From Pelomyxa schiedti (Eukaryota > Protista > Evosea), in NCBI GenBank assembly GCA_020536535.1, contig JAHLWZ010000406.1:1-64000 (forward strand): DNA of 64,000 nucleotides, given 5' to 3'. Shown piece after piece: positions 15-43,700 of this stretch. The notes under the pieces are model-generated. The model worked only from the letters and a program-made list of their open reading frames with translations, was not told where the DNA came from and did not search any database. Each line of letters opens with the position of its first letter. The stretch's first letter is position 1. The position numbers were made by a program, and so were the translations under genes.

Positions 15-2233
15 GTGGCGCCGAAAAGCGAGTTGGGGGAGTGGTGTGAGAACCTTCGTTTGGCCCCTCCTGAGCTATCCTCCCAAGTGCTCAGTGCTCT
101 TGAAGCCAATGCAGTGGACAGTATGACTGTGCTACGTGAACTCACAGCTCAAGAGCAAGAGGAGCTTTGCAATGAAATGAGTTTCTTGAAAGTGGGAAAC
201 AAGAAGAAGGTCCAGGCAGCCCTGAAAGCGTTGGTTCCCAGCCCTGGACCACAACAACTGGTGCCACCACAACAAACCCCCCCAGTCACACTCTCACAGT
301 CAGAGATAAATACCATAGCCGAGTTTGTTGAAGCCGGGTACTCCTCTGAGCGAATCCTAACATTGCTTGGTGGTGACACACAGCCGGAAAAGGCACTTCT
401 CATTCGAAAGCAGATGTCTCTGCTCATCCGACCGCCAAAGGAGCCCCCAACGAAATGCAAAAAGCTCACTGTGAAGCGTCCAGGAGTATCTCACTTGCTG
501 CCACTTTTCCACTACCCCTCACATGAAATTCCATCCAAGAAGTACCACACGTTCTTGGTCATTGGTGAGACAGGCTCTGGGAAAACAACGCTGCTGGATG
601 CCTTTGTTAATTACCTTGCTGGTATGGAATTCAATGACGACTGGAGATGGAAGCTCGTGGATGAGGACTACATTGCCAACAAGCCGACATCTGAAAGCCA
701 GACTGACAGGATCACATCTTATTTCATCAATGACGAAAGGCTTCCAGAGAAGAAGAGAGCTCACGGTGGAGAATTCAATATTCAGATCATTGACTCGCCT
801 GGCTTCGGAGATACCGCGGGAGTTCTCAGGGACAATAAAATCGTTGCCCAGTTTGATGCTCTGTTCCGCACTCTTGACCAGTTGGACTACATCCTGATCA
901 CAGCCAACTCGCTTCAGCCTGGGCACTCGTTATGTATACGATCGCGTTCAGCAGCTATTTGGAAAGGATGCTGCCAGCAGGTTTATATTGATGTGCACAT
1001 TTGCGGAGGAGGGGATTCCACAAGTTGTTGCCACACTGAAGCCGCATTTACACTTTGAAAAGTTCTTCACCTTCAACAATTCCGCTCTGTATATATCCCT
1101 GCGTCGTTTTCCACACTCCAGACCAAGTTCTTTTGGAATATGGGAAACTCGAGCATTGTGAACTTTATTGAATTTGTGAATCAGGCAGCAGCACCCCCTC
1201 TCAGTCTCAAGCTGACTAAAGCTGTACTGGCCGATAGGGAAGCTCTTTACGCGCGCGTTGAGGTAACTCAGCAGAATATAAACTCCGGATTCGAAAAGTT
1301 GGAGTGCATGGGGAAGCTCATAGAGGAAATAAAGAAAAACAGAGGGAAGCTAGATGCACACGGGTCTTTCACGTATGAGACTGTGGAGGATGAATATGTC
1401 AGGACGCCTGCTCCAAAGGTAATCCAATTATGCACTGTCTGCAAAGTTTCCTGTTGCCAAATTTGTGCGTGGCCGGCAAATGCAACTGAATCGCAGTGCA
1501 CCTACTTCAACGGGGGACGAAACTGCCCAAAATGCCCCGGCCAATGTGCCAAGGATAAGCATGTCAGAACATCTGATATTGTGACTATCCGCCAAGTGAG
1601 GGTGACTAAGGAATACACAGCGTTGAGGCAGGAAGTTCAAAACGGGCTGAGTCTGTCGGAAAATGCTCTAAATGAAGAAAAAGAGAGGTTTAAGGCACTG
1701 GCACGTCAGATTTGTGAAGATATGAACAACGTGAAGGGTTTGTTGTCGGAGCTGCAGAGGATCGCGCTGAAGCCCATGGTGTTCACCAACACACAGTACT
1801 TTGAGGAGATGATCGAATATGAGAACAAGAACAAGAACCCTGGCTTTGCTGATCGCATTGAAGGCCTCAATGTAATGCTGGCTCAGGCCCAAGCTCTCAA
1901 CAAAGTCAACTCCGCTTCTACGCCTCTGGACTTGTTCCCAAAGTTTTCAGCTGTTATTGACGCAATTTCACAGAGAGACCCAGGTGCAAGGCAGGGTTGT
2001 TCCTNNNNNNNNNNNNNNNNNNNNNNNNNNNNNNNNNNNNNNNNNNNNNNNNNNNNNNNNNNNNNNNNNNNNNNNNNNNNNNNNNNNNNNNNNNNNNNNN
2101 NNNNCAGGCCCAAGCTCTCAACAAAGTCAACTCCGCTTCTACGCCTCTGGACTTGTTCCCAAAGTTTTCAGCTGTTATTGACGCAATTTCACAGAGAGAC
2201 CCAGGTGCAAGGCAGGGTTGTTCCTTGATGTAG
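15..2233 (+). pseudogene. SAM-like domain + septin/AIG1-related P-loop GTPase with Cys-rich C-terminal region; two frameshifts (pseudogene or consensus error); 5' end may lie upstream of the window
   Basis: G1 VIGETGSGKTT and G3 IIDSPGFGDT. SAM-like N-terminus (ELGEWCENL...LKVGNKKKVQAAL). Protein-like coding continues in the +1 frame from ~907 to ~1092 (TRYVYDRVQQLFGKDAASRFILMCTF...FTFNNSALY) and returns to the first frame at a TATATA run (~1090). Cys-rich CTVCKVSCCQIC...CPKCPGQC. C-terminus QGCSLM* lies after the gap. Confidence 0.75.
1884..2225. other. Scaffold gap (100 N, 2005-2104) flanked by an exact 121-bp duplication (1884-2004 = 2105-2225)
   Basis: The sequence caggcccaagctctc...gggttgttcct appears identically on both sides of the N run, typical of unmerged overlapping contig ends. 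Confidence 0.9.
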
Positions 2234-6868: not shown

Positions 6869-7137
6869 CTTGGGTGTGTTAAGCAGATCGCTCAAATCTA
6901 ACCACCGGCTGTTCGAAGGTTAGCCACGATTACGTGACGATCAGATCTTGTTTTTTCGGTCAAAATGGGAATGAAGGTTTTCTGGCAGAAAACCTGCGCA
7001 GGGGAATCAATGTGTCACACAATGTGGGTGCGAAGTGGAGGTTCCCAGCAATTACTCAAGTCAGATCCAATTCGGGCACTTGGATGTGAACACTTGGCCG
7101 TTTAAAAGTGGCACAACGAACCAAAAAGCAGCAAAAA

Positions 7138-10100
7138 ATGAAAAAGAAAGGAATACCGTCGCATGGGTTGTGGGTGGGACAGGCCGTAGTTCTGGACAGG
7201 ACCACCAACGAGCCAATATCCACCATCGAACTCACGTGGTCCCTATGCCTCACCCTGAGCCCCACTTTTCCCGCTGCCTTTGGTGCATCCCTTTTCATGC
7301 CCTCTTCGTCCCCGTCCCCCTCGCCCTCGCCCTCGTCCTCTTCTCTTTGTTCCTCTGCAGCCTCCTCCCCTCCGTCTCCGGACCAGGAGGCGGCCTCGAC
7401 CCCGAGCGCTCCCCCGCAGCGAGGCGGGCAGTTCGGGCTGCTCAGGGGGAAGTGCCAGCAGGCGACGGGGTGGGTGGGCCCGCTGGACGAGTACGTCGAC
7501 GGCGTGCTGGTGAGGACGTGGTCGGCGACGGCGCAGGCGGGCGACGACGGCGCCATCGAGCTCACCGGGGTGTGGCGCGCCGTCCCGCCAGGGGGCCCCG
7601 CGGCCTCCGAGGGCGCCGCCGCCGCGGCGGACCCGAGTGCTGCTGCTGCTGCTGCTGTTGTAACTGCAGGCGTCTTCGCGATGAGGAAGGAGGAAGAAGG
7701 CGAGAAGAGGAGGAAGGGAGAGGGCGAGGGAGCGGAGGAGGGGGAGCAGCAGGCTACTGGGGACGCGGCGGAGAAGCGGCACTTCTCGGGGCTGTGGCTG
7801 GGGCAGGCTGCTCCGGACCCGTCCTTGGAGGCGTTCTTCATCGCCACGAACCCAATTCGCTGGTCGCTGAGCATCGTGGACGACAGGGCCGCGCTCTCCG
7901 TCCCACAATTGCGGGAGAGGGCACGAGGGGGCAGTAGCAGTAGCAGTAGCAGTGGCGGCTCTTCTGGCCCTGGGGGGCTGGTGTTTGGCTGTGGATTCTT
8001 TGATGATGCTGCTGATGTGCCGAACCAGCCTTTGCTATTTTTCTCGCTGATTGGGACTTTCGACAGGCAGACATCTACGGTGTGTCTCATAAAGGAGTAC
8101 GAGGACAAGTCTGCTGGGTATACTGTGGAGTACACGGGAAAAGTACCTTTCCCTTTGTTTTTGCTTTTGGCACGATTAACTTTCAATCAGATAGAACAGG
8201 CTGAGGATAAGAGTGTCTGGTTCCGGGGTAGTTGGAACAATCCTGTTGCTGGAAGCTTTGGAAGCTTCAGTTGTATGCAACAAGCTGCCAGCGGGGTTGC
8301 TTCTATGCACATCTTCCAATGTGATGTCTGTAATGTACTTATAACACCTGGTGAGAGCAGGTGGAGTTGTGCTGATTGCCCAAAGCCCTGGTGCTGCTGT
8401 ACCAAGTGCTATGCTGCCGCCACGTCTTTGGGAAATCTGCACCCTCATAGCCTTAGACCAGAAGCTGTCCACGAAGCGGAATTTGCTCAAGGAGCTTGCA
8501 GTGCACAGTTGATTGTTGATGCATTCCGCCGGTTTCCCAAACGTGACTTCTTGGGTTTCCGTGCAACCGCGTCCCAGAAAGAACATGAGTGGCAGAGCTA
8601 TGCACAAGTCGCTGAGGATTGCTACAATGTTGCATGTGGCTTGCAGTCTGTTGGTGTCGAGGCTCGCAATGTAGTATTGTTTTGCTGTGACATTGATCAC
8701 ACCTATGTTGCCCCTCTACTGGCTTCAGTAGTCTTAGAATGTATTGTAGTTCCCGTTCATGGTGCACTAGATGCCGATTCTTTGACTCATATTTGTGCAA
8801 AAACCAAGCCAGCAGCGTGCTTTGTTTCACCTGAATACTGGCCTAAACTTAGTGAAATACTAGCATCTACTTCAGTTACGCCAAAGGCAATTATTATAAT
8901 GCCCCATTCTTCCACCACAGCCCCAACGGCACCTATTGCCTCACCCCAGTTTGCCTTCTTTGATACACGAACAAAGTTGATGGAAGTTGGTCAAGTGCAC
9001 CGTCAAGGTCCAGGGCATGAATTTTTCCAGTCAAAGATATTGCACCCACCTCGCCTCCCACTAAGTGAGATAACGGCGGTACTGTTCACGAGTGGTAGCA
9101 CTGGCAGGTTTTTCCTTCCTCAATCTACTCCTCAGTTGTTTACCACTTCACAGACCAAAAGGAGCAATGTTCAACGAAGAACTTCTTCTACCAAGTGAGG
9201 GTGTATCTGTTGTGCAGCCGTATATTCGCCTTGATTTTCAGGTGAAGCATTTTTCTTTCAAGTAAAATAACTAATCCACGCAAAAAGCCATTTGATCCCT
9301 CGTTTCTTCTCTCAGTGCTATCCACAATGCAGTGTGGCGGGTGCCGTGCCTTTGCACACTCACTGGCAACACTCATGGATGACTTCAAAATTGCACGCCC
9401 TACACATGTGGGAGCATCACCTGTTCTTTGGAACTCCTTACATACAGAGTTCTGTGCCAGAGTGGCAGAAGAAATGAAAAATGTGCTGAGTGACAGCACT
9501 ATCGACAAGAAGAAACAGCAAGAACTCGTTGAAGAGAACGTGGCCAAGCAAATGCGAGCACAACTTGGGAACAGGCTCAGTGTTGCCACAAGTGGTGGTG
9601 CCCCAATTTCCAACCAAGTCATTGAGTTTGCCAGGAGGTGGCTGTCTCTCTATATTGTGGACCTATATGGAAGTAGGGAGACTGGCGGGATTTCCCGTGA
9701 TGGAGTAGTCTATGCAGGTGTTGATGTCCAATTACTGAGCCATCCAGAGATGGGCTATTACGCCGATGGCGATCCTCCACAAGGAGAGATCTGTGTTGCA
9801 GTACGTAAAGACCTAAATTATCTTCGTTAAATGCAGAACTGATTGTGCTGTAAAAAGAGCCCAAGGCTTATACCAGGGTACTGGGGAGATGAGGAATTGA
9901 CAGCTGCTGCTTTCGTACAAATAAATGGAAAACGATACTACAGGACGGGTGATGTTGGGGAAATATGCAGACAAAGCGGCACCACTCGTGTGCGGGTTAT
10001 TGATAGGTGTTCTAATGTGTTCAAGCTTGCACAAGGAGGTAAGAACGATTTCACTTATTCCACTAAGTCTCTAATCGGAAACAGAGTGGCTAGCACCAGC

Positions 10101-12118
10101 CAAAATAGAGGCAGTTTTAGAAAAATGCCCGTACATTAAGCAAGCATTGGTGACTGGAAGTCCGGCGCAACCCGTAGCTATTGCTGTAGTAGTGCCAACA
10201 CCACTTTTTACCCAATTTTGGGGTTTGAAGCCCGCCGATGAGTCTGGGATGACAGCATGTGAAACAACCATCTTACGAGAGATCCGCTTTTGGGCCAAGC
10301 ATTGTAAGTTGCGCCCCATTGAGATCCCAGCTGCTGTGCACTTGGAAAGAGTAGAGTGGACTCCAGAGAACGGACTATTAACATCCACAGAGAAAAAGAG
10401 ACGCCAGGTTTTATGTGGCCATTATAAAGGCATTGTAGAAGGCTTGTATGCAAAGCTATCATCCAGCTCAACTTCAACTTCGGCTTCCAGTACTGTCCTT
10501 GATGAGGACAGGGGGGAGACCGTTTCGGCCAACTTTGAGCGAATTATCCGAAGTGTGCTTCCACCAGGTGTCTCCATCAGCCCTTCAGCAACTTTTACTG
10601 AGATAGGAGGAGATTCACTATCAGCGGCACGTCTGGTAAACACCCTTGCTCAGGAGGGGTTGTCAGTGGCTCCACAGATTGTATTTGAGTATCCCTTGTC
10701 ACACCTCTCAAGAATGCTTGAGCAAACAAAGAGCGGATCAGTGGTGGCTTCTGAGCAGTACGGTGGGAGTGTTGAAGTTAACTGGGCTGCGGAATGGAAC
10801 TTGCAGAGCTATGGGCTTAATACAAATTTGAGTGACACACACGTGGCCCCCAGTGGCAACCGCGATGGCGGCAGTGTATTTGTGACTGGGTGCACAGGGT
10901 TCCTGGGTCCTGTTCTGGTATCTGAAATTTTGGCGCAATATCCACCCACAGTTTCCGTGCATTGTTTGATGCGAGATCAAAATGAAACTGCAGCAATGAG
11001 TAGATTGTGTGATGGAATAAAGGATGCCGGCCTTTGGCGTGACGATTATGCCACTCGGTTACATGTGGTTCTTGGAGATTTATCAAAGGAAAATTATGGA
11101 TTATCACCTGAACAGTTCCAACTTTTGTCGAAAAACTTGATTGCTATATATCACAGGTACCACCTTTCGTTGTAATGTTGTTTACAAACTTTCATTGTAG
11201 TGGTGCTCGAGTGAATATGACAATGCCCTATTCCGCTCTGAAACCTGCCAATGTAGGCGGAACAGTTACTGCCATCAAATTGGCAGTTCTAGCGGGTCGT
11301 GGTACAACTCTCGCCTATGTATCATCTGTAGGTGCACTTCCACCTATTGTGTCTTCCTCAAGTAGTTCCACTCCCGACGAAGAAGCACTTCAATGCCGTG
11401 AACAGTGGCTCAAGCTTGATTCCCATACGATGGGGTTAAAGGGGGGCTATGGACAATCCAAAGCCGTGGCCGAGCGCCTACTGTGCCACGCACGTGAAAT
11501 TCTTGGAGTAGATGCACGTGCATTTAGGCCATCAGCTGTCAGTGCCCATACACAGACCGGCTGGTGCAACACACTCGACTTCACCACACTCATACTGCAT
11601 GCCTGCGTAGCCGCACGAGGCATTGTTGCTGATCCGGAAACAAAGCTCCGCTGGATTCCCGTGGATTTTGTAGCCTCAGCCATTGTTTCTCTCAGCCGGG
11701 CTCCCTGCTGTGCTGCAACTCATGGTGTCCACCACCTTGGAGGCAGTGGACCGCTTCTATCACATGTTGGCAAAGTTCTGGTTTCTGCCGGCTACACATT
11801 GGATGTATGTTCTCCCTCTGAATGGAGGACAAGAGTCACTGCAGCAATCACGCCAGAGAGTCCCACTTTTTCCGTATGGAATTACAAATTTGTCTTCACA
11901 AGTACTGACAACAAACAACCTAGGTGAAGCACCTGCTATCCAACTATCACTTTTCACCTGAGGGACAAGGGACAATACCGCCTGGGTCTGGCACTCTGGC
12001 TGCCCTTAAGCAAATTGGCTTGGCTTGGCCCAATGAAGAACAGGCATTTTGTCCAGAGGTCATCATGAAAGCAATCAATTTCCTTATCACCAAGAAATTC
12101 CTCCCCTCAACTCCCTGA
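7138..12118 (+). CDS. Carboxylic acid reductase-like NRPS-type protein (adenylation-thiolation-reductase) with N-terminal beta-rich domains and ZZ zinc finger
   Basis: A domain: FTSGSTGRPKGA (spliced), YGSRETG, YYRTGD, FKLAQGEWLAP, NGLLT. PCP: GGDSLSAARL. SDR reductase: VTGCTGFLG, GYGQSKAVAE, WIPVDFVA. ZZ-like CDVC..WSCADC..CTKCY..HPH. Introns are canonical. Confidence 0.88.
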
Positions 12119-25246: not shown

Positions 25247-28200
25247 CTAGAAAAGGGAGAAAGTCGCTTCCGTGTTTTTGGATAACCACGGCCTCTGATC
25301 TGAGCGAGCCCGCATTAGTCCCATTGTGTCATTAACAATCTGATCAAATGAGGTACAGGGTGGTGCTGTCTCCACAACTGTGTTTCAAGCTTTAGTATTT
25401 GGGGAATGCTGTTTTTAGGGAGGTAGAACCGTCCAAGAAACATCCGGTAAAAAGACCGTTGTCGGGACGCCTGGCACCACCGTCAGCTGCTGACATTCCT
25501 GCAAAACAGTCAGTATCTTATGTGTACATAGTTGATGCAGAGAAGAAATTACCTGGGCTTGTGGGATAGAAAATTATGCACCCATCTAATTGCACCGCTG
25601 CCAGGCCCGGCTTCGCCACGGCAGCAACTCCGGCACCACGTGGCTTGTGGAAAAATTTGTCATCAGTATTTCTTGACTGGAAGGAAGTTCATACCAGTGC
25701 TTCATTAGGGTCACGTGATGCGCGGCAGCAATCTAAAATGACAATAACCAGGTCTGACTCCGCTTTTATTTCATTTATGACTGCTCCAAGGATTGGTGCC
25801 TTGGCTTCGAGTTCGGTAAATTTTTCGTCTTTTGAGCCTACTGGAGGAGTATACTCCGTCATCAACAAAAAGTTCTGCCCTTTTTTCTGGAGTCCATGCC
25901 CAGCAAAGTAAAGAAGGCAGGCATTCTATAGACATTAGAGTAAACCAGGTTGTTTGAAGCCAGCTTTTTTGTAAAAACCTTTTTCCCTGACGATTTACTT
26001 TTAGCTTTCATATCTGCTCTCAATTTTGATAAGTGCAAATAAAACGCTTCCCGAGAGGGTACATCCGTGAGGTGTGTCACATCAAACTTGCATTTACTAC
26101 TTAAAAACTAGAGTGTGAATTACAAGATATTCACATTCGAAAAAAGAGAACCTCTGCAATGCATTTGGCGTCATTGAGTGCATTTTGAAGTAGGCCTGCC
26201 ATGTACGTCTGATTACCTATAACAAAAGCAAAGCAATTGAAATCTAGTTCTGGTCCCCAAAGAGGAGTGATAGCCCGGTGTTCAGGTGCTGCTTGTATAG
26301 CTGCTGAATTAAGTGCCAGTGGAACTGACTGGTTCATCTGGGATCGGGAACCATTTCGTTCATCAAACCAATGCCAAGTTAAGTTATACAGCATGTTGGA
26401 AGGTGCGATGAACTGCACATCTGAACCATTTGTTGTGGAACTTGTGGGATTGTGGGCAATTCTCCTCAGGACAGAGCTGGCAGAAAAGAGCATTTGAACA
26501 ACTGGAAGGGGCTCAATGATGCCATTTGAGCCCTTTCTCCTTGGTGTGTCTCGCACAGCCTGATGGAGAGCATGGAAAAGAAGTGTGCCACTATAGTCCC
26601 TATATGAGACACTGTCTGCTAGTGTAGAGTGCACCAGAACCATATCTCCTTCCTCCACTGTGATATCACAGCTTTTGGAACTTGAAGCCCCCAGCTCCCG
26701 TGAAATAATTTCCACAGCAGGTGTTTTTTGTGGACCTCTGCACGCGGCAATCAAGAAAAACTTTGCCTTCCCTTGCAGTGTGGGGCTTCTCGTGCAGGTA
26801 AAAATACCTAAAGAGAAAAGATTTATTATCTGCAAGTATTTTAAGGGCGAAATACTCATTATATCTTCATGTACGGATATCTTTTGCCCATCTACATCAA
26901 GGAGACAGTCTTTGCCGCCTACTTCTTTGCCGCCATGTGAACCACTTACAAATACAAACGAGTTGGCAAGGCTATTATCAGTTGCTGCAGAAATTTTGGT
27001 AAGAGCCCGAATGAGATTCTCTTTGATTGGGTTCTCCATGTAGAGAATGTGAAAGAAAGACCCAAATGCTTTTTGAATGATAGCCAGGTCATTCTCAGCT
27101 CCACTTCTGTCCTTTGTCGTATTGGCAAATAGAAGATACCCGTTCTTTCCATGCTGCAGCTACAAATTCCAGTAAATTTTGGAGTGGTTAGAAGTATTGG
27201 GCCTACTCTGGGAAGAAAAGAATCCACGCTCAGGGTATCAATGGATGGGCTCTAAGAAATGCAATTAGGGTTGACAAAGGCCAAGAAACCCACCTTGATA
27301 GTGACTGGTGCAAGAGACAGAGAGGCTGTCGAGCGGGGGATAGAGGCTTCAGAGGGTGCTGATGTGGCAGAGGGCGTCGAGGGTACAGAGGGTGTGGAGG
27401 CCGAAGAGACTTGAGATGTTGGACTTGTGGTATCACTCTCCTCTGGAAATTGGCATAAAGAGGATAAAGACACAATTTCAGGTGAAGCTCCCCTCACAGC
27501 AGTTGTGTAGTTTCTTGGTGCCGTGAGACAAGAGGAATCAAGCTCACTAGTGTCACTTCCATCCTTGTGGGTAACTAGAAACTTGTACAAAAGAGGGCTG
27601 CCCATGTAGCGTCTCAAGTTGGCAATCCAGTACCCACTAGCGGAGTTAAACGTCATAGGAATAGGTTCCCAGCTGTTGAGATTACATGTAATTGATACAG
27701 AAATTACGTCCGTGCGGTTAGAGTAACAGAGTGTTGTTGTTACTTGTTTTTTGGGTTGAGTGGCAGAGTTATCAGGTTGCAGACTCCTTTTGGCTGGAGT
27801 GGGAGTAACTCTGATAATTTCGAACTGAGGTTGGCCGGAATTTTCTGAAAGGGTCATCCTATCTCCATACTTTGCCATAAGATAGTGCGTGGGGAATCTG
27901 TACATTCCCAGTCTACCCTTTGGATGTGTGCCTGTTGTATCATCCCCAACGTGAAACCACCAATAGTCGTCTGCACAGTTCCCCTGTTCCCATGCACCTA
28001 CCCAATGTTTGCCCGAATTTTTGCAGTCCAAGAGCCTTGGCCGGCCCTTGGAGTCCGTTTTGTCTGGAATCATGATTCTGTAAGTGGAAGGCGAAACTTC
28101 ACAGAACTCAAATATAGTGGACTTTGATTCTATTGCCGTCCTCCTCAGCCACAAATTTGAATTAAGTCGCAGGAATTCCCCATTAACCAGTCTAATCCTT

Positions 28201-31200
28201 GCACTGAATGTCACATTTACTGATGGACTTTTATAATGCGGCGAGCCTGTATGGTGAGCGATATATTCTGAAGCAAGGAAATGCTGTTTCAAAACAAAGT
28301 CTTTAGTCCTTTCAATTGCAAATTGTCTTGGACGAGAAACTGGCTGTACGTCTAGCAGCAAAGTCTTCAGTTCTTCATCCACCTTCATTTCCCAAAATGA
28401 CTTAAATAAGGTTACAAAACCATAAAGTAAGCCCAATCCCTCTGGTTTCTTTGCCTTCCAGGATCGCATGTCTTCTTTTATAAGTTGCACCAGTTTGGGC
28501 TTGATATTGGTACAGTAGAATAGAGCATAGAGCCATGTTGCAAGCCGAGTGAGTGCCAATCGTCCATTGATTTGTCCTCTGTCCCTGTCACATGGGGACT
28601 CACGTGTTGGCTCCCAGACTTCATATCTCTTCTCCTTGTCGGTAAAATCAACTACAGATTCCTCATCAGCATTCCATCCTCTGCGGTTTGCATGTGTCCA
28701 GTAAAGTGAATATGTACTTAGGGAGCCCAATGGGTTATAGTGACGCACGACTGTCACGAATTCATCAGCATGGGCAAATACATCTTGTAATGGGTGGAGG
28801 CCTTTCCCAAGGTTTTTTGCAGCCTCTCTACGGACAGATTTCCCAAGTGCTTTTCGTAGCTGTTGGAGGCAATGTTGCAACCTCGAGTCAGAGTCATGTC
28901 CACCTTCCACAGTATGGTTAATATTGAAGTGCCACGATTGTGCATATGCTGAAAAGATATTCGACGGCGTTGTGGAGAGCGCATCATCAACCTTTTGGAA
29001 AAATTGTTGGTTAACGAGGGACGTATAGGAGTCTACAACCTTTTGGCAAGACTTGCTCACATGGGAGCTCCACTCTTCATCAAACCCTGCCTCACAAAGC
29101 CATTTCCAGGTATTACCTTTGTGCACAGTCTCACCCCAATCAACCATGAAAGCGCGAGGTTGGAACAGTGCTCGATCCCCGCTGTCATAATCATGGACAT
29201 TGGAACTTGGGTCAAAGTTTAAAAAACTGTCAAGTACTTGCTGAGCAGTGGTGTTTCGGCCATCTTTGCATTGTTTGATAATTTCTACTAAAGAACGAGG
29301 TATTTTCTCAGATAAAGGCAAGCTTGAGGCATTACGTATAAGGCTGGGCTTAGGAGTCATTTCAGCAAGCATTACCCCAAATGAGACAATATCTTTCGCA
29401 CAGGAGATAGTAGCCTGTCCAAGTTCTGCACTCAGTCCATAGCCTGCAATTGCGAGATCTGTAACCTTCGTTCCCAGAACATTGACAAGTATATTCTCGA
29501 GTCTAATATCACCATGCACAATACCGAACTTGTGTATGTCCCGAATTCCAGATATCACACGCTGAGCAATGAAGGCCACGTCAGTCAGTGAGAGGATGGA
29601 TATGTACTTGAGAAGGTAATCCTTAAGTGAACAGCTGAATCGTGGGCAAATCATGAACCACTTGTCTGCCTGCTTGAAAAGCAGCTGAAATGGGAGGATA
29701 TTTAATGCTGTATCTTCTACTGTGTGCCGAAAAAATGCATCCTCAAAGAATTGACATTGCACAGCTTTTGTAGCAACTGCCATGTCCAATTCTCTCCCCA
29801 TCATGTGACGATTTTCCCATACTACCTCCAGTGCTGAAGTACCCCTACCTCCTGTGTCAATATCAAGTCGGGGAGAAACACCAGATAAAATCTCGCTTGG
29901 GGGATCAATTTCTCTATGTTTTGCCTGGAGGGCTAAGATTTCTGCAATGAGCTGCCCAATCAAATGTCTCATCTCTGTGAGATTTGTACTGTGTTTTTGA
30001 AAATGTGGTATCATATCTGCCCTCAGCTTGCGCCGTTGCTCTAGAATTGTCTTAAGATCGGAGGTAAATCTTTTCAATGTTCGGCGCGTTACTTCAAAGA
30101 AGAAGGTTGCATCAGATGATAGACAATCGTTTTGAAAAGCAAGAACTGATCTTAGCATTGCCTCCAAAATACTGGATTGACGAACCTTTTCGTCAATCAC
30201 TCGCGCGTCGAATACTTGACGAAGTTTTTCCTCAATCACTCGCGTGTCGAATAGTTGACTGAAGTGGTCGTCCATTAAGCGATTGACGAATGGTGGGACA
30301 CGTGGACCCGCGTCTGTTTGACTCGAATAGCAATCCAAGCAATATCTGAGATGAGAAATAATATTAAGTTCAGCTATCTGCACTATCTCCCTCAGGGTAT
30401 CGTCTTCCACAAGTTTTTGGAGGCTTTTATGTATACTCTCTTTGAAAAAGCAACAGAGATCGTTCACAATGGGGTAGGTGAGTTTTTCTGCCAGTGGCTC
30501 TCTATATTTACTGAGATATTCAAGGGGGATAATCCTTTCATCCTCAGAGAACTCTTTTCTTACTTTTTGCATTTTCCTGGCAATGATAGAGGGGATTGGT
30601 GTCAGTTTGCTCCGTAGTTCTTGTTCACAAGCAGTTTGAAAATTATCAATCATCCCAACGATGTCACGATACCATTTTTCAGTCCCAGCTGGAGTACTGA
30701 GGCGTAATGTATTGAAGTTTCTGAAGAAGCAGCCCAGCGCATCAACCATATACTCCAATGCCTGGTTGCACCTCTTTTTTTGACTGGCAATAATCCAGAT
30801 TAAGAACCATAAATAGTCCAAAGGAAAAGTCACTTGGACAGTCACCAGCCAAGAAATCTTGGGCACTGACACAGCAGAAGCAATTACAAAAATCAAAGCG
30901 TCCCACCTGATCTGCAAGTTGCATCCTATTCAGAAGGGTACTGAGCCTGTCACTGTTGAATTTTTCAACATCTATCCTTGTGGTCGAGCTTGGCCTCTTG
31001 TTCAGTTCTATGGCAATGCGTTGCAGCTCAACATGAGTATTGGCAAAAAAGATTTCTGGTATGTTGTCACTGGCGGAGTGTGAAAGGATTTGTTTCAGCT
31101 GGGCGCAAGCCTTAAGCTCAGTGGGACCAAATGGAAGAGTTGTAAAGGAGAAAACAACTCCATGAGGAAGGTATGCCGATAAAAACGTTGTGAGGAAGGG

Positions 31201-32164
31201 GGCCAGAATGTCACCAAATTGTTCAAAATAAGTAGAACCTGGCAAATTAGCCAATTCTATCCCCGTTTCAAGAAGTGGCAGGGGGACTTCAGCAATAATA
31301 AATTCTTTTAACCATGCCTGGAGCTCTGTCACTCCTGGGTTTTAATTTGTCAGTTACATGAACAAATGAGCTAGGCCTTACCGTTTGGAAGACTTGCATT
31401 CGAAAGGTGGACAGCTAGATGGGTACCAATTTCAGAAGCAGAAGAACAGTCTTGCAGACGTTCCAAAACTTCACCTGCAACGATTGTGCCATTAAGGATT
31501 CGCCCAATCCGAACGCAGGCATTTGACTGCTTTGCAAATCTCAACAAGCAAACTTTGTATGAACAAAGTGAATGTCCAGGAGGGAGAATAGTACCGCCAC
31601 ATAGACAGTCAAGAAGAGCAGATTTGCCTTATTAAAGGCCGTTGTTATCAACTGTGAACAAAGAAGATGGGGTAGGTACCAGAACCCTCGGGACCAAAAA
31701 AGGCAATGCGCAGAGGATGAGGCTGGCAAATATTTTCAACATACTTCTGAATCGTTGTAGACATGAGCGCAGCCTCCTCTGTACCTCCAAGAAATTCCAG
31801 AACCTCACCGTGCAGTGTTTTAAATCCTTCAAAGCACAGTGCTGTTGGTGCGAATAGGTGTTCTGGTAAAGAAGCAAGACATTTCCCCAGTTTTTGTCGG
31901 GAAGTGTCGTCCTGGGCTGTGTGCCGTGTGATAAACTTATGGGAAGCCGCCACATAGTCCTGGAAGGTGAGTGCATTTTTGCGTGCTCCAGTGCAACGAT
32001 ACATTTTGAGGTAGAAAAGTTGGTTTGCTTTATTCGTATCAAGATTAGTTAGACATTCCGCTTTTCAAAAGTTGGGCGTTGAGACAAACTTGGCTTGGTT
32101 CCTCTGCACAGAAAAAGTCCTCCTTGATGGTTTGGGAGCCTTCCTCTAGGAGTTGTGGCGGCAT
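25247..32164 (-). CDS. Giant multidomain protein: dynamin-like G domain - helical region - pseudokinase - HET-C/Zn-PLC-like domain - beta-rich domain - CBM48-like - caspase (p20+p10) - paracaspase-type C14 domain
   Basis: Spliced GPEGSGKSALLDCLCGGTILP. Kinase-like HGDIRLENILV..IAGYGLS..DIVSFG. WGETVH..WHFN..LGKGLHPLQDVFAH. VSITCNLNSWEPIPM..YKFLV. Caspase: RSGAEND..SHG..GKAKFFLIAACRG..STLADSVSYRD. Second C14: VIGNQTY..LQNALNDA..YFAGHG..ILDCCR..NGLFT..QRPW. The ORF segments join through canonical GT-AG introns. Confidence 0.8.
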
Positions 32165-40774: not shown

Positions 40775-43700
40775 TCACCAGGGGGTTACTGTGCATCCAG
40801 CCAAATTCCAACGGTAGAATGGAACTTTATTTGGTTCTAGAGCCCACTGCATAGTTTCGGGGTTCATTGTGTACATAGCGTCACCTTCCCCAAACAATAC
40901 CACCTTATTTCCGATTGTGAGGTTTTGTTGAATTTGAGAGGAAATGTGAAGAACCTTGTTCAGCTTGTCCAGGTACGTGACGACGCGGCCAGTAGAAATC
41001 CCGTGGTTCTCAAAAAACGGGACATATTCCCAGGAGTTGCTGTTCAAGTCCAGTATTTCCACCGGCGAATCGTCTGGAGAATTACCTCCTCCACACATAA
41101 TGACTTTGCCCTCTGCGCAAATTCCCCTCTCTCTCAACAGTCTATTCCGTAGAACCGGATCCGGCGAGAACATAATAGTGTATGATGTGTGGCCATATCT
41201 AGACTTAGGAAGCGAGGGCAGGTCTCTCCACACACCCTCGCCGACGAGGAACATTGAACAGCTGAGATGGTAGATATTCCTGCCTGATTGCCCGCCGGCT
41301 ATCACTATGGCGTGGTCCTTGACCTCAGTGCCGTGCTTCCATAGAGTAACGGGAACGATGGTGGCAGAATGACCGGCCAGTGGTTCCGGCATAGGAGGAA
41401 GCGGTTCCCAACGCATTTTGACAGTGTCAAATACCTCGGCGGAATCGAGGTACCCACTCCCACAGGAAGTAGTGCCCCCGAAGACAAATACTGAGTTTGG
41501 CGTGGCACATGACGCGTGCGCGCACCTCGGCGTGCTCATCGGGGGTAGTTCATACCACGCCAATTCATGTAGGGAGCTTTGCTCACAAGCGGCGAGAGTG
41601 GCCGATGTTATTGGCAAAGCATATGCACAATCTATGGCAGAAGCTCCGGTAAAGCCCCCAGTCACAAACACGGTTGAGCAGCCAAGAGCGCAACATGCAC
41701 AATGACCGCGGACTCGATATTGTAAGTTGGGAAGGGAAACCCAAGTTCCCTGCTGAGGGTTGTAGAGTTGTACAGTTCGGCCGCACATATTAGTGGCGCG
41801 CGTCAGCCCACCGGAAGCAAGGATATCTTTAAAACAACTAAGTTTGCATCTAGATACAATGGAGTTGAAAACAATTAGACGGTTGGATGAAGCTGAATAT
41901 GTAACGTAAGATGTCCACAGGTAATTGGGATATGGTTAGCGCTTCAAATAGTTATACCAAAGAAAGTAAGTGCAAATAATACTATGCATTGGATATGCTG
42001 CTACTTTTGGGAGTCCATAGGTTACACCAACAAGGAAAGTCAAAAGTGCACGTTTCCATTTTTCATCTGTTGTAGAATGATCCGTCACTAGGGTTGAACG
42101 GTTTGGACCTGTGAGGAATAAGTGTTTACTTTAACAATATAAGTAAATTACCAAGTGATTGAAAGAAGGGGGATAAGAGATGTGGGAGACTTGACAGGGA
42201 TAATTTTATGTCATAGAGAATGTCAGGGTCATCAGCACCAGGATCAAAAAAGTTGATCACTGTTCCTTCTAAAAAAATATGGCCTGCGTAACCAGCATTC
42301 TCTGCGTAACAGCTCATATCTTGTTATGTTAAAAAAAGGACTATTGCTGAGACTTACTTTCTGGAAGATCATAATTAATAACACAAGGAGTTGTCGTCAT
42401 GGTATCTTCATTTGAAACCAGAACATAGAATCCCTTGACAGTGCGCTGCCTAACTGGCAGCGTGGCATTCATACGTCTATTCCTGCAGAATTTCTGGATA
42501 TTATAGTGAAAAGCACTGCTCCAGTCAACTGTTTCAAGGAAGTGGGCCACTTGATCCGCCCCCTCTATACTGCTAGTATATACCAATGCCGGTATGTTTT
42601 TACCTGAAAATGAGATGCTTTTTACATGGTGTATCAGGTACCATTTTGAAGGATTTGACTCAGTTTCGATTCTTTGGAGTTTCCCCCTGTAAAGATGATG
42701 TCATGATGCGCTTGTTTTATACGCCCAAATATGTCCAGTGATATAAGAAGAGCTTTTTGAGGTAGCACCTCTTGAATGATAGCCTCCACTTGCCTGGTAC
42801 AAGGAGGTTTGCAAGAAAGTATCTTTCTTGCGTGGTTTTGGGTCAAAATTTTGCATGTATTTTCTACGTCTTGATCGGAAAACCTGGGAGCATTAGCAAT
42901 CACGTAGAGAGATAAGTGGAAAGACCTATCGATATCGTGTACTATTATGTAGCGTAACTGTTTAAGGGAGACATTTCCTCTCTCAAAAATATTCAGAACT
43001 ACGTCTGCACACGAGACAATAACCACAGGGTAACCATGCCCAATTGCTGAGATCAAACTCTTCTTATGTTCCCATAGAACTTGGCCAGCAAGTTCGATTA
43101 CAGTAATAGGGAGGTCAAGAAAACCAGAAAAATCCCGCAAGTGCAAAGCCACTCCTGGCACCATTGCCTCTGATTCAACCAATATCAGAGCCTGAATTGA
43201 TGGACGTGAACGTAACATGGATAGCTTCACAAGCAAAAACAAATCCTATTGGTTTCCGAGGTTATTAGGGGTACTGGCAACACACGATACATACATATAC
43301 GTTTGAAGAAATAACAAAAGAAGAAGCTAACAAGATATCATTTTCATATAGAAGTAACGCCGGCAGAATAGCCTGCTGCATGACCGATAGCTCAGTCCCA
43401 TAACGCATGACGATCCTCTTTACAACCGAGGGAGGCAACCCCAAATGATCCCAGGAGCGAGCAGGCAATGGCAGGTCATCATCAAGCTGATGTTGATCCC
43501 ACCAGACAGTCCCAGGAACTGAAAGTGCGCCCGAATACCATTGCATCCTGTCAGACAAGTCATTGACCTCGCGAGGCTGCAGCCAATTTTCGACTCCTTT
43601 TGGTGGAAGGTGGGTGATGGTGATTCTTCTTTGGTCCATGTAAATCAGCCAGTCTCTTTTGGTCATAGTCTCGGGAACGGAGTATATCTGGTCTAATTCT

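Follow-up and report, generated by a model that had tools for sequence, protein, structure and literature searches.

A candidate protease-armed hydrolase cassette in a frameshifted, caspase-bearing gene of Pelomyxa schiedti

In the caspase-gasdermin pair, cleavage at an Asp in a site with a hydrophobic P4 residue unmasks an effector. Zinc-dependent phospholipases C (Zn-PLC) and P1/S1 nucleases share a common fold and its metal ligands, and zymogens of this kind, including B. cereus PC-PLC, Listeria PlcB and Tox-HET-C (PMC3482391), depend on proteolysis to free the residue Trp1. Polymorphic toxins with caspase-like releasing peptidases likewise use a protease in cis to free a toxic domain (PMC3482391). 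The dyads of family C14 are common to metazoan caspase-8 and -3, MALT1-type paracaspases and, outside animals, the caspase-like enzymes of Reticulomyxa (PMC5982838). A literature search found no paper on caspases of Pelomyxa. Dynamin-like proteins of the BDLP, LeoA and mitofusin type, together with animal DSTYK, serve as the comparison for a Dynamin_N G-domain and helical stalk, which in Pelomyxa are followed by a kinase in a family of paralogs.

Here we analyze a gene of Pelomyxa schiedti with parts comparable to these systems. It lies on the minus strand of the window, by which we mean the whole 64,000-nucleotide stretch of contig JAHLWZ010000406.1 that was analyzed. Searching the gene exon by exon and comparing the NCBI model for the choice of exons, we obtained the order dynamin-like GTPase, helical stalk, pseudokinase, Zn-phospholipase-C/P1-nuclease fold, beta domain, CBM48-like module, animal-type caspase and paracaspase (Table 1). 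The domains, their order and the protist source given in an earlier note on this DNA were thus borne out, with Dynamin_N, Pkinase, the Zn-PLC fold, the CBM48-like module and two C14 domains with His-Cys dyads all recovered. At NCBI, the locus is the model "caspase 8 [Pelomyxa schiedti]" (2008 aa), whose domain annotation is limited to Pkinase and Peptidase_C14. Among 5.8 billion proteins, the long open reading frame has a full-length match only to this model, and the whole layout is absent from the 58 other phmmer hits among 1.84 billion representatives, nearly all of which are to the hydrolase domain. The note's statement that no such architecture has been described agrees with these searches, which found no second protein with this layout. 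We conclude that the chimera is real, transcribed and apparently unique. We propose that the tail of this paralog of the dynamin-like GTPase/kinase family is a protease-armed hydrolase cassette, a reading that we consider about as likely to be right as wrong. Other genes in the window are an adenylation, phosphopantetheine carrier and NAD-binding reductase gene resembling carboxylic acid reductases (7108-11927, plus strand), a P-loop NTPase with weak septin/nSTAND-like hits (15-2225, plus strand) and a Kelch-repeat gene (40778-41788, minus strand).

Table 1. Features of the gene, with positions in the window.
Feature	Position	Strand	Evidence
Putative first exon (ATG 32164)	32090..32164	-	similarity to paralogs begins at acceptor 31959
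Exon ending in first half of P-loop (G1)	31680..31959	-	GxxxxGKS split by intron 31679-31628
GTPase exon, end of G1 and G2 region	31382..31627	-	Dynamin_N E 0.0038; RNA contig, spliced loose end at 31384
GTPase exon in frame A, G3, G4 and segment taken as intron by NCBI and the earlier note	30811..31334	-	paralog alignment; RNA contig 30983-31150
Frame break, 5 nt shorter than in paralogs	30807..30811	-	DNA alignment to two nearest paralogs
Helical stalk	29850..30806	-	hydrophobic hairpin of 7/7 paralogs missing
TKL-like pseudokinase	29202..29849	-	Pkinase E 7.5e-10
Predicted arming site F-M-V-D/W (slash, proposed cut)	29136..29150	-	Asp codon 29141-29139, Trp1-equivalent 29138-29136
Zn-phospholipase C / P1-S1 nuclease-fold hydrolase	28496..29138	-	family-conserved His/Asp ligands all present; RNA contig 29059-29177
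Beta-rich domain	27800..28230	-	also after hydrolase in homolog P0003
CBM48/CBM20-like carbohydrate-binding module	27520..27750	-	Pfam E 0.15; E 2e-13 to CBM48-repeat protein
Ser/Thr/Pro linker, intron 27293-27252 and micro-exon 27251-27207	27207..27500	-	
Caspase, C14A-like	26400..27159	-	best PDB matches caspase-8 and -3; RNA contig 26381-26608
Paracaspase-type C14	25247..26240	-	His 25898, Cys 25727, acidic S1 residues; stop 25249-25247

By analogy, the protein would work like a protease-released toxin or a caspase-gasdermin pair, while being a member of neither family. In contrast to the Zn-PLC zymogens, it is not secreted, its "propeptide" is a GTPase-kinase chain, and the caspase proposed to mature it resides in the same chain. 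It differs from polymorphic toxins in that the gene is eukaryotic and spliced and the proteases, two with opposite predicted specificity, lie downstream of the effector; a secretion module and an immunity gene were not seen. Asp cleavage after a hydrophobic P4 residue is also what we propose here, but unlike gasdermin the putative effector is an enzyme in need of a new N-terminus and not a pore, and protease and substrate belong to one gene. The S1 pockets resemble the metazoan caspase/MALT1 pair, basic in the first C14 domain and acidic in the second, whereas a death-fold prodomain and Ig domains are lacking, the two domains stand in tandem in one exon, and the host is an amoebozoan. Compared with the BDLP/LeoA/mitofusin type, the window copy has lost the G2, G3 and G4 residues, the hairpin and the reading frame.

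The introns between 31959 and the stop codon at 25247 all measure 42-54 nt and keep the frame. The intron after the putative first exon is unusually long (130 nt) and doubtful; NCBI instead places the start at 32004. Introns 26151-26108 and 25978-25926 are confirmed by contigs from a single-cell RNA run, which also support a third one through a 12-nt spliced loose end at 31384. RNA contigs touch the GTPase, hydrolase (29059-29177) and caspase (26381-26608) regions. They are found at either end of the gene and in between, and three cross splice junctions. Coverage is sparse (8% of words), and no contig of this run spans 30810 or 27294. The junction at 27294 is best modelled as two short introns flanking a 45-nt micro-exon, and the end of the caspase shares one exon with the start of the paracaspase. 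Within the hydrolase, an in-frame 48-nt intron (29039-28992), also found in the NCBI model, is probable, since all homologs shown have a gap of 16 residues at this place. The in-frame kinase intron of the NCBI model (about 29336-29286) is probably false, as paralogs carry sequence there. A separate caspase gene is unlikely: the first in-frame Met (27039) comes after the S1 Arg, and the stop of the long open reading frame falls on a splice acceptor. RNA run X1 differs from the window by one base at 26472, changing Val to Ile at the end of the caspase, and the RNA sample may therefore carry another allele.

Between GTPase and stalk, a boundary motif conserved in the paralogs is split across two frames, and without rescue frame A reaches a stop at 30744-30742. 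The segment skipped by NCBI and by the earlier note (30906-30774, 133 nt) shares 51% amino acid identity with the paralogs, is as well conserved as its flanks and differs from the paralogs at codon positions 1/2/3 by 0.31/0.27/0.66. Because of this conservation and the concentration of differences in third positions, it must have been coding until recently; an ordinary intron is ruled out by conserved coding sequence in comparison with the intronless paralogs. Downstream of the break, 1171 codons are open (chance about 1e-29). The exons sum to 3n+1 nt, so that a single chain of ~2,000 aa requires a rescue splice, which is unproven. The earlier claim of one ~2,000-aa protein consequently stands for the short introns that keep the frame, but not for the junction near 30900-30775, which is homologous coding sequence with a frameshift at ~30810. 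An assembly error at this site is not favored: contig X3 from the DNA run is letter-identical at the break, yet the assembly may itself derive from this run, and minor alleles are lost from contigs. The frameshift in the reference copy is recent and separates the GTPase from the rest. With 5 nt deleted, only a rescue by splicing would keep the GTPase attached, and the copy is therefore a null allele, an allele rescued by splicing or a form without the GTPase; the downstream part may be left untranslated in the sequenced isolate. The public gene model, which presents the lesion as an intron, calls for caution.

If a new intron skipped the deletion, the product would be an intact full-length protein of ~2,000-2,080 aa in which a short stretch is damaged where GTPase and stalk meet. 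Frame-restoring GT..AG pairs exist, among them pairs of normal intron size at 30906-30858 (49 nt), 30887-30833 (55 nt) and 30807-30762 (46 nt), splice signals in this gene are weak anyway, and reading is open on either side of the lesion. However, the skipped DNA bears the full coding signature, the NCBI intron of 133 nt compares with 42-54 nt for the others and bypasses a nearer CAG, the normal-sized pairs have poor signals, and the 3' end of the 46-nt candidate is rich in purines (pyrimidines 0.18 versus 0.41-0.71). We regard such a rescue as unlikely; it concerns expression and is therefore compatible with the arming mechanism proposed below. Closer to an even chance, if slightly short of it, is that this copy, a member of a birth-and-death family, recently became a pseudogene or null allele and would no longer make the effector, whatever its ancestor did. 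The premature stop at 30744, the degenerate GTPase motifs, the sparse RNA and decayed GTPase-kinase family fragments at two other contigs (C495 and C602) fit this explanation, whereas a single lesion in 6.3 kb of exons and the presence of spliced RNA in another sample argue against it.

About ten paralogs carry the GTPase-stalk-kinase core, and in the seven that were aligned the reading frame runs uninterrupted from G3 through the whole kinase. One paralog is matched by Dynamin_N with an E value of 1.3e-14, against 0.0038 for the G2 exon of the window gene. The latter has an intact P-loop, but Ser replaces the G2 Thr, Asn the G3 Asp and Glu the G4 Asp; both Asp residues are retained in all seven paralogs, and the G2 Thr was seen in one. 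Its stalk has a maximal 19-aa hydropathy of 0.87, compared with 2.0-2.5 in the paralogs. In the pseudokinase, which clusters on a long branch with two active-kinase paralogs, the beta3 Lys is changed to Arg, HRD to HGD and DFG to AGY, and the activation segment and APE are lost. Judged by motif, GTPase and kinase are dead, the front half would be at best a scaffold, and the GTPase was degenerate already before the frameshift. An active GTPase sensor or membrane oligomeriser, as envisaged in the earlier note, is not supported, given the three substitutions and the missing hairpin. Language-model features place the paralogs near bacterial dynamin-like proteins and mitofusin (0.88-0.89, a lead only), and a paralog stalk model (pLDDT 54) matches MxB, LeoA, BDLP and Drp1 with Z 8.0-8.8, within the chance range of helical bundles. 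A paralog-profile search outside Pelomyxa gave no result. DSTYK, to which the earlier note likened the core, was absent among the matches to the GTPase-kinase core in word-index and low-confidence-model searches of limited sensitivity, and a literature search found no paper on its GTPase domain. Elsewhere in the genome, GTPase-hairpin-pseudokinase genes form tandem arrays (L013-L014 at C602:1-19000, L017-L018 on C882), some of them broken. Kinase motifs are largely active in paralogs L015 and L021, and in NCBI model P0063 the G-domain comes only late in the protein.

The structural model of the hydrolase has a pLDDT of mostly 85-96. In structural comparison, the top six hits (Z 9.6-6.0, next 4.1) comprise three P1/S1 nucleases, two phospholipases C and alpha-toxin, with Z 8.6-9.6 for the Zn-PLC fold. 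Model residue 21/22 pairs with residue 1 of mature B. cereus PLC, Listeria PLC and alpha-toxin, and the metal ligands are complete, including the Trp1-equivalent and a Trp1-His14-type start. We therefore predict a phospholipase C or nuclease from sequence and model. Foldseek with this model returned only weak PLC rows, and Pfam scores stayed under the cut-off (VWA7_N 0.0048, Zn_dep_PLPC 0.025). The "HET-C" call of the earlier note holds at the level of the fold only: Het-C (PF07217) gave no Pfam hit in the window, although two hydrolase homologs show weak Het-C hits, and Het-C is predicted to have the same fold as Zn-PLC (PMC3482391). In only one of the 58 phmmer hits, homolog P0003, does the match extend into the beta domain.

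The caspase carries its Arg179-equivalent at 27108, His at 26937, Cys at 26742 and Arg341-equivalent at 26601, interrupted by intron 26855-26808. Dyad and both S1 arginines are thus present, while the Gln283 position (the S1 Gln, QACxG) is Ala. Based on these residues, we predict an Asp-type caspase with a basic S1 pocket. No close paralog of the caspase exons was found, though the genome has other C14 loci (see below), and a homolog search with the caspase region gave no result. The best PDB match of the paracaspase, MALT1, is weak (E 0.17, one exon), and the death and Ig domains of MALT1 and type 1 paracaspases were absent in exon scans. This paracaspase module is mobile: there are at least 26 copies, which elsewhere follow Sel1 or LRR repeats plus a SAM-like segment. 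Examples are L048 (C495, LRR and SAM-like, with the decayed GTPase-kinase fragments upstream), L049 (C423, Sel1 and SAM-like) and L050 (C2001, an unknown and a SAM-like part, catalytic Cys missing). Further C14 loci occur on C511, C165 and upstream on C694; at G000:C694:53651-57874, partly covered by L047, a C14 match lies ~2.5 kb upstream of a SAM-like segment and paracaspase on the same strand, making it a possible second two-protease gene.

In Listeria PLC, the main chain of W1 is a metal ligand, and a single extra N-terminal residue abolishes activity (PMC10576769). Because one extra residue inactivates this enzyme, an internal hydrolase domain needs a cut exactly before its Trp. Among 40 homologs, this Trp is preceded by Gly-Gly in 28, by an RHS-type autocleavage motif in about eight, by a signal-peptide site in one and by a Met-Leu start in one. 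An Asp is found in none of the 40 but in the window protein alone, where Gly-Gly, RHS motif and signal site are all absent. The earlier note had overlooked this Asp/Trp site, which supplies a concrete mechanism: the caspase in the same chain may cleave F-M-V-D/W and thereby arm the hydrolase, a proposal whose chances we see as evenly balanced. It rests on one sequence, with no ortholog in which to follow conservation of the Asp. Farther along the chain, two homologs with Gly-Gly/Trp, P0018 and P0056, have a deubiquitinase of the CE clan or OTU type, one with sub-threshold scores, so that judged by architecture site and cis-protease fit there too; one such homolog is from an uncultured gammaproteobacterium.

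Alternatively, the Asp could be coincidental, with the hydrolase latent or armed by another protease and the C14 domains acting as signalling proteases on other substrates, like the LRR/Sel1-SAM-paracaspase fusions of this genome. An Asp is expected at the site by chance in 6% of cases from exon composition and nearer 1 in 6 in the Asp-rich linker. Caspases favor small P1' residues, for which Trp is atypical, and the mobility of the paracaspase module points in the same direction. On the other side, Trp1 stands nearly always right behind a processing site in this family, the three other signals are missing and the ligands are all retained, and we consider coincidence possible but rather unlikely. 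Independently of the Pelomyxa gene, P0004, P0006, P0007, P0009, P0013, P0018, P0029 and P0056 form an unannotated, apparently bacterial family. Its front domain of ~85-100 aa, without a Pfam hit, ends in a ubiquitin-like Arg-x-x-Gly-Gly sequence that abuts the PLC-fold Trp1, and some members include an OTU or CE-clan deubiquitinase of their own, WD40 repeats or ankyrin repeats. By sequence, these proteins are candidate deubiquitinase-armed effectors.

Behind the hydrolase, a ricin-type beta-trefoil is a lead only for the beta domain (atlas score 0.76, below chance level; model pLDDT < 50), and comparison with PDB sequences gave no result. The micro-exon in the Ser/Thr/Pro linker holds a second candidate Asp site, L-S-V-D/S. 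Pelomyxa contains glycogen stores and prokaryotic endosymbionts. Together with the CBM48-like module and the lack of a known immunity partner, this would suit a lipid-remodelling enzyme targeted to glycogen or to endosymbiont vacuoles, which undergoes regulated proteolytic maturation and is no death or defence effector. A single lineage-specific chimera on a long branch, the turnover of the family and the resemblance of the hydrolase relatives to RHS toxin tips and effectors make such a housekeeping role improbable.

For the arming mechanism, we envisage the following steps. Clustering by stalk and pseudokinase or by the carbohydrate modules would gather caspase domains and activate them. As the fit of the sequence suggests, the Asp-type caspase would then cleave F-M-V-D/W and free Trp1, which, as established for the PLC fold, would complete the metal site and switch on the phospholipase C or nuclease. 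The freed hydrolase-beta-CBM fragment would damage nucleic acid or membranes as part of defence or of regulated cell death, roles that hold as a plausible reading of the earlier note, while the paracaspase would cut Arg-type substrates. More tentatively, and in our view rather improbably, the gene could by itself encode a switch for death or defence that a caspase executes outside animals and that is expressed in nature through an intact allele, a rescue splice or an internal start, its lock re-keyed from a bacterial Gly-Gly/deubiquitinase to an Asp/caspase type.

The value of the locus is its intact hydrolase-caspase-paracaspase half together with a precise activation hypothesis. The hydrolase family appears to swap its activation key together with the protease, and the Pelomyxa gene points to an effector that is gated by a caspase yet is not a pore. 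For an amoebozoan caspase of the animal type, a specific substrate, site and readout can now be named; to our knowledge, such caspases have hardly been described in amoebozoans.
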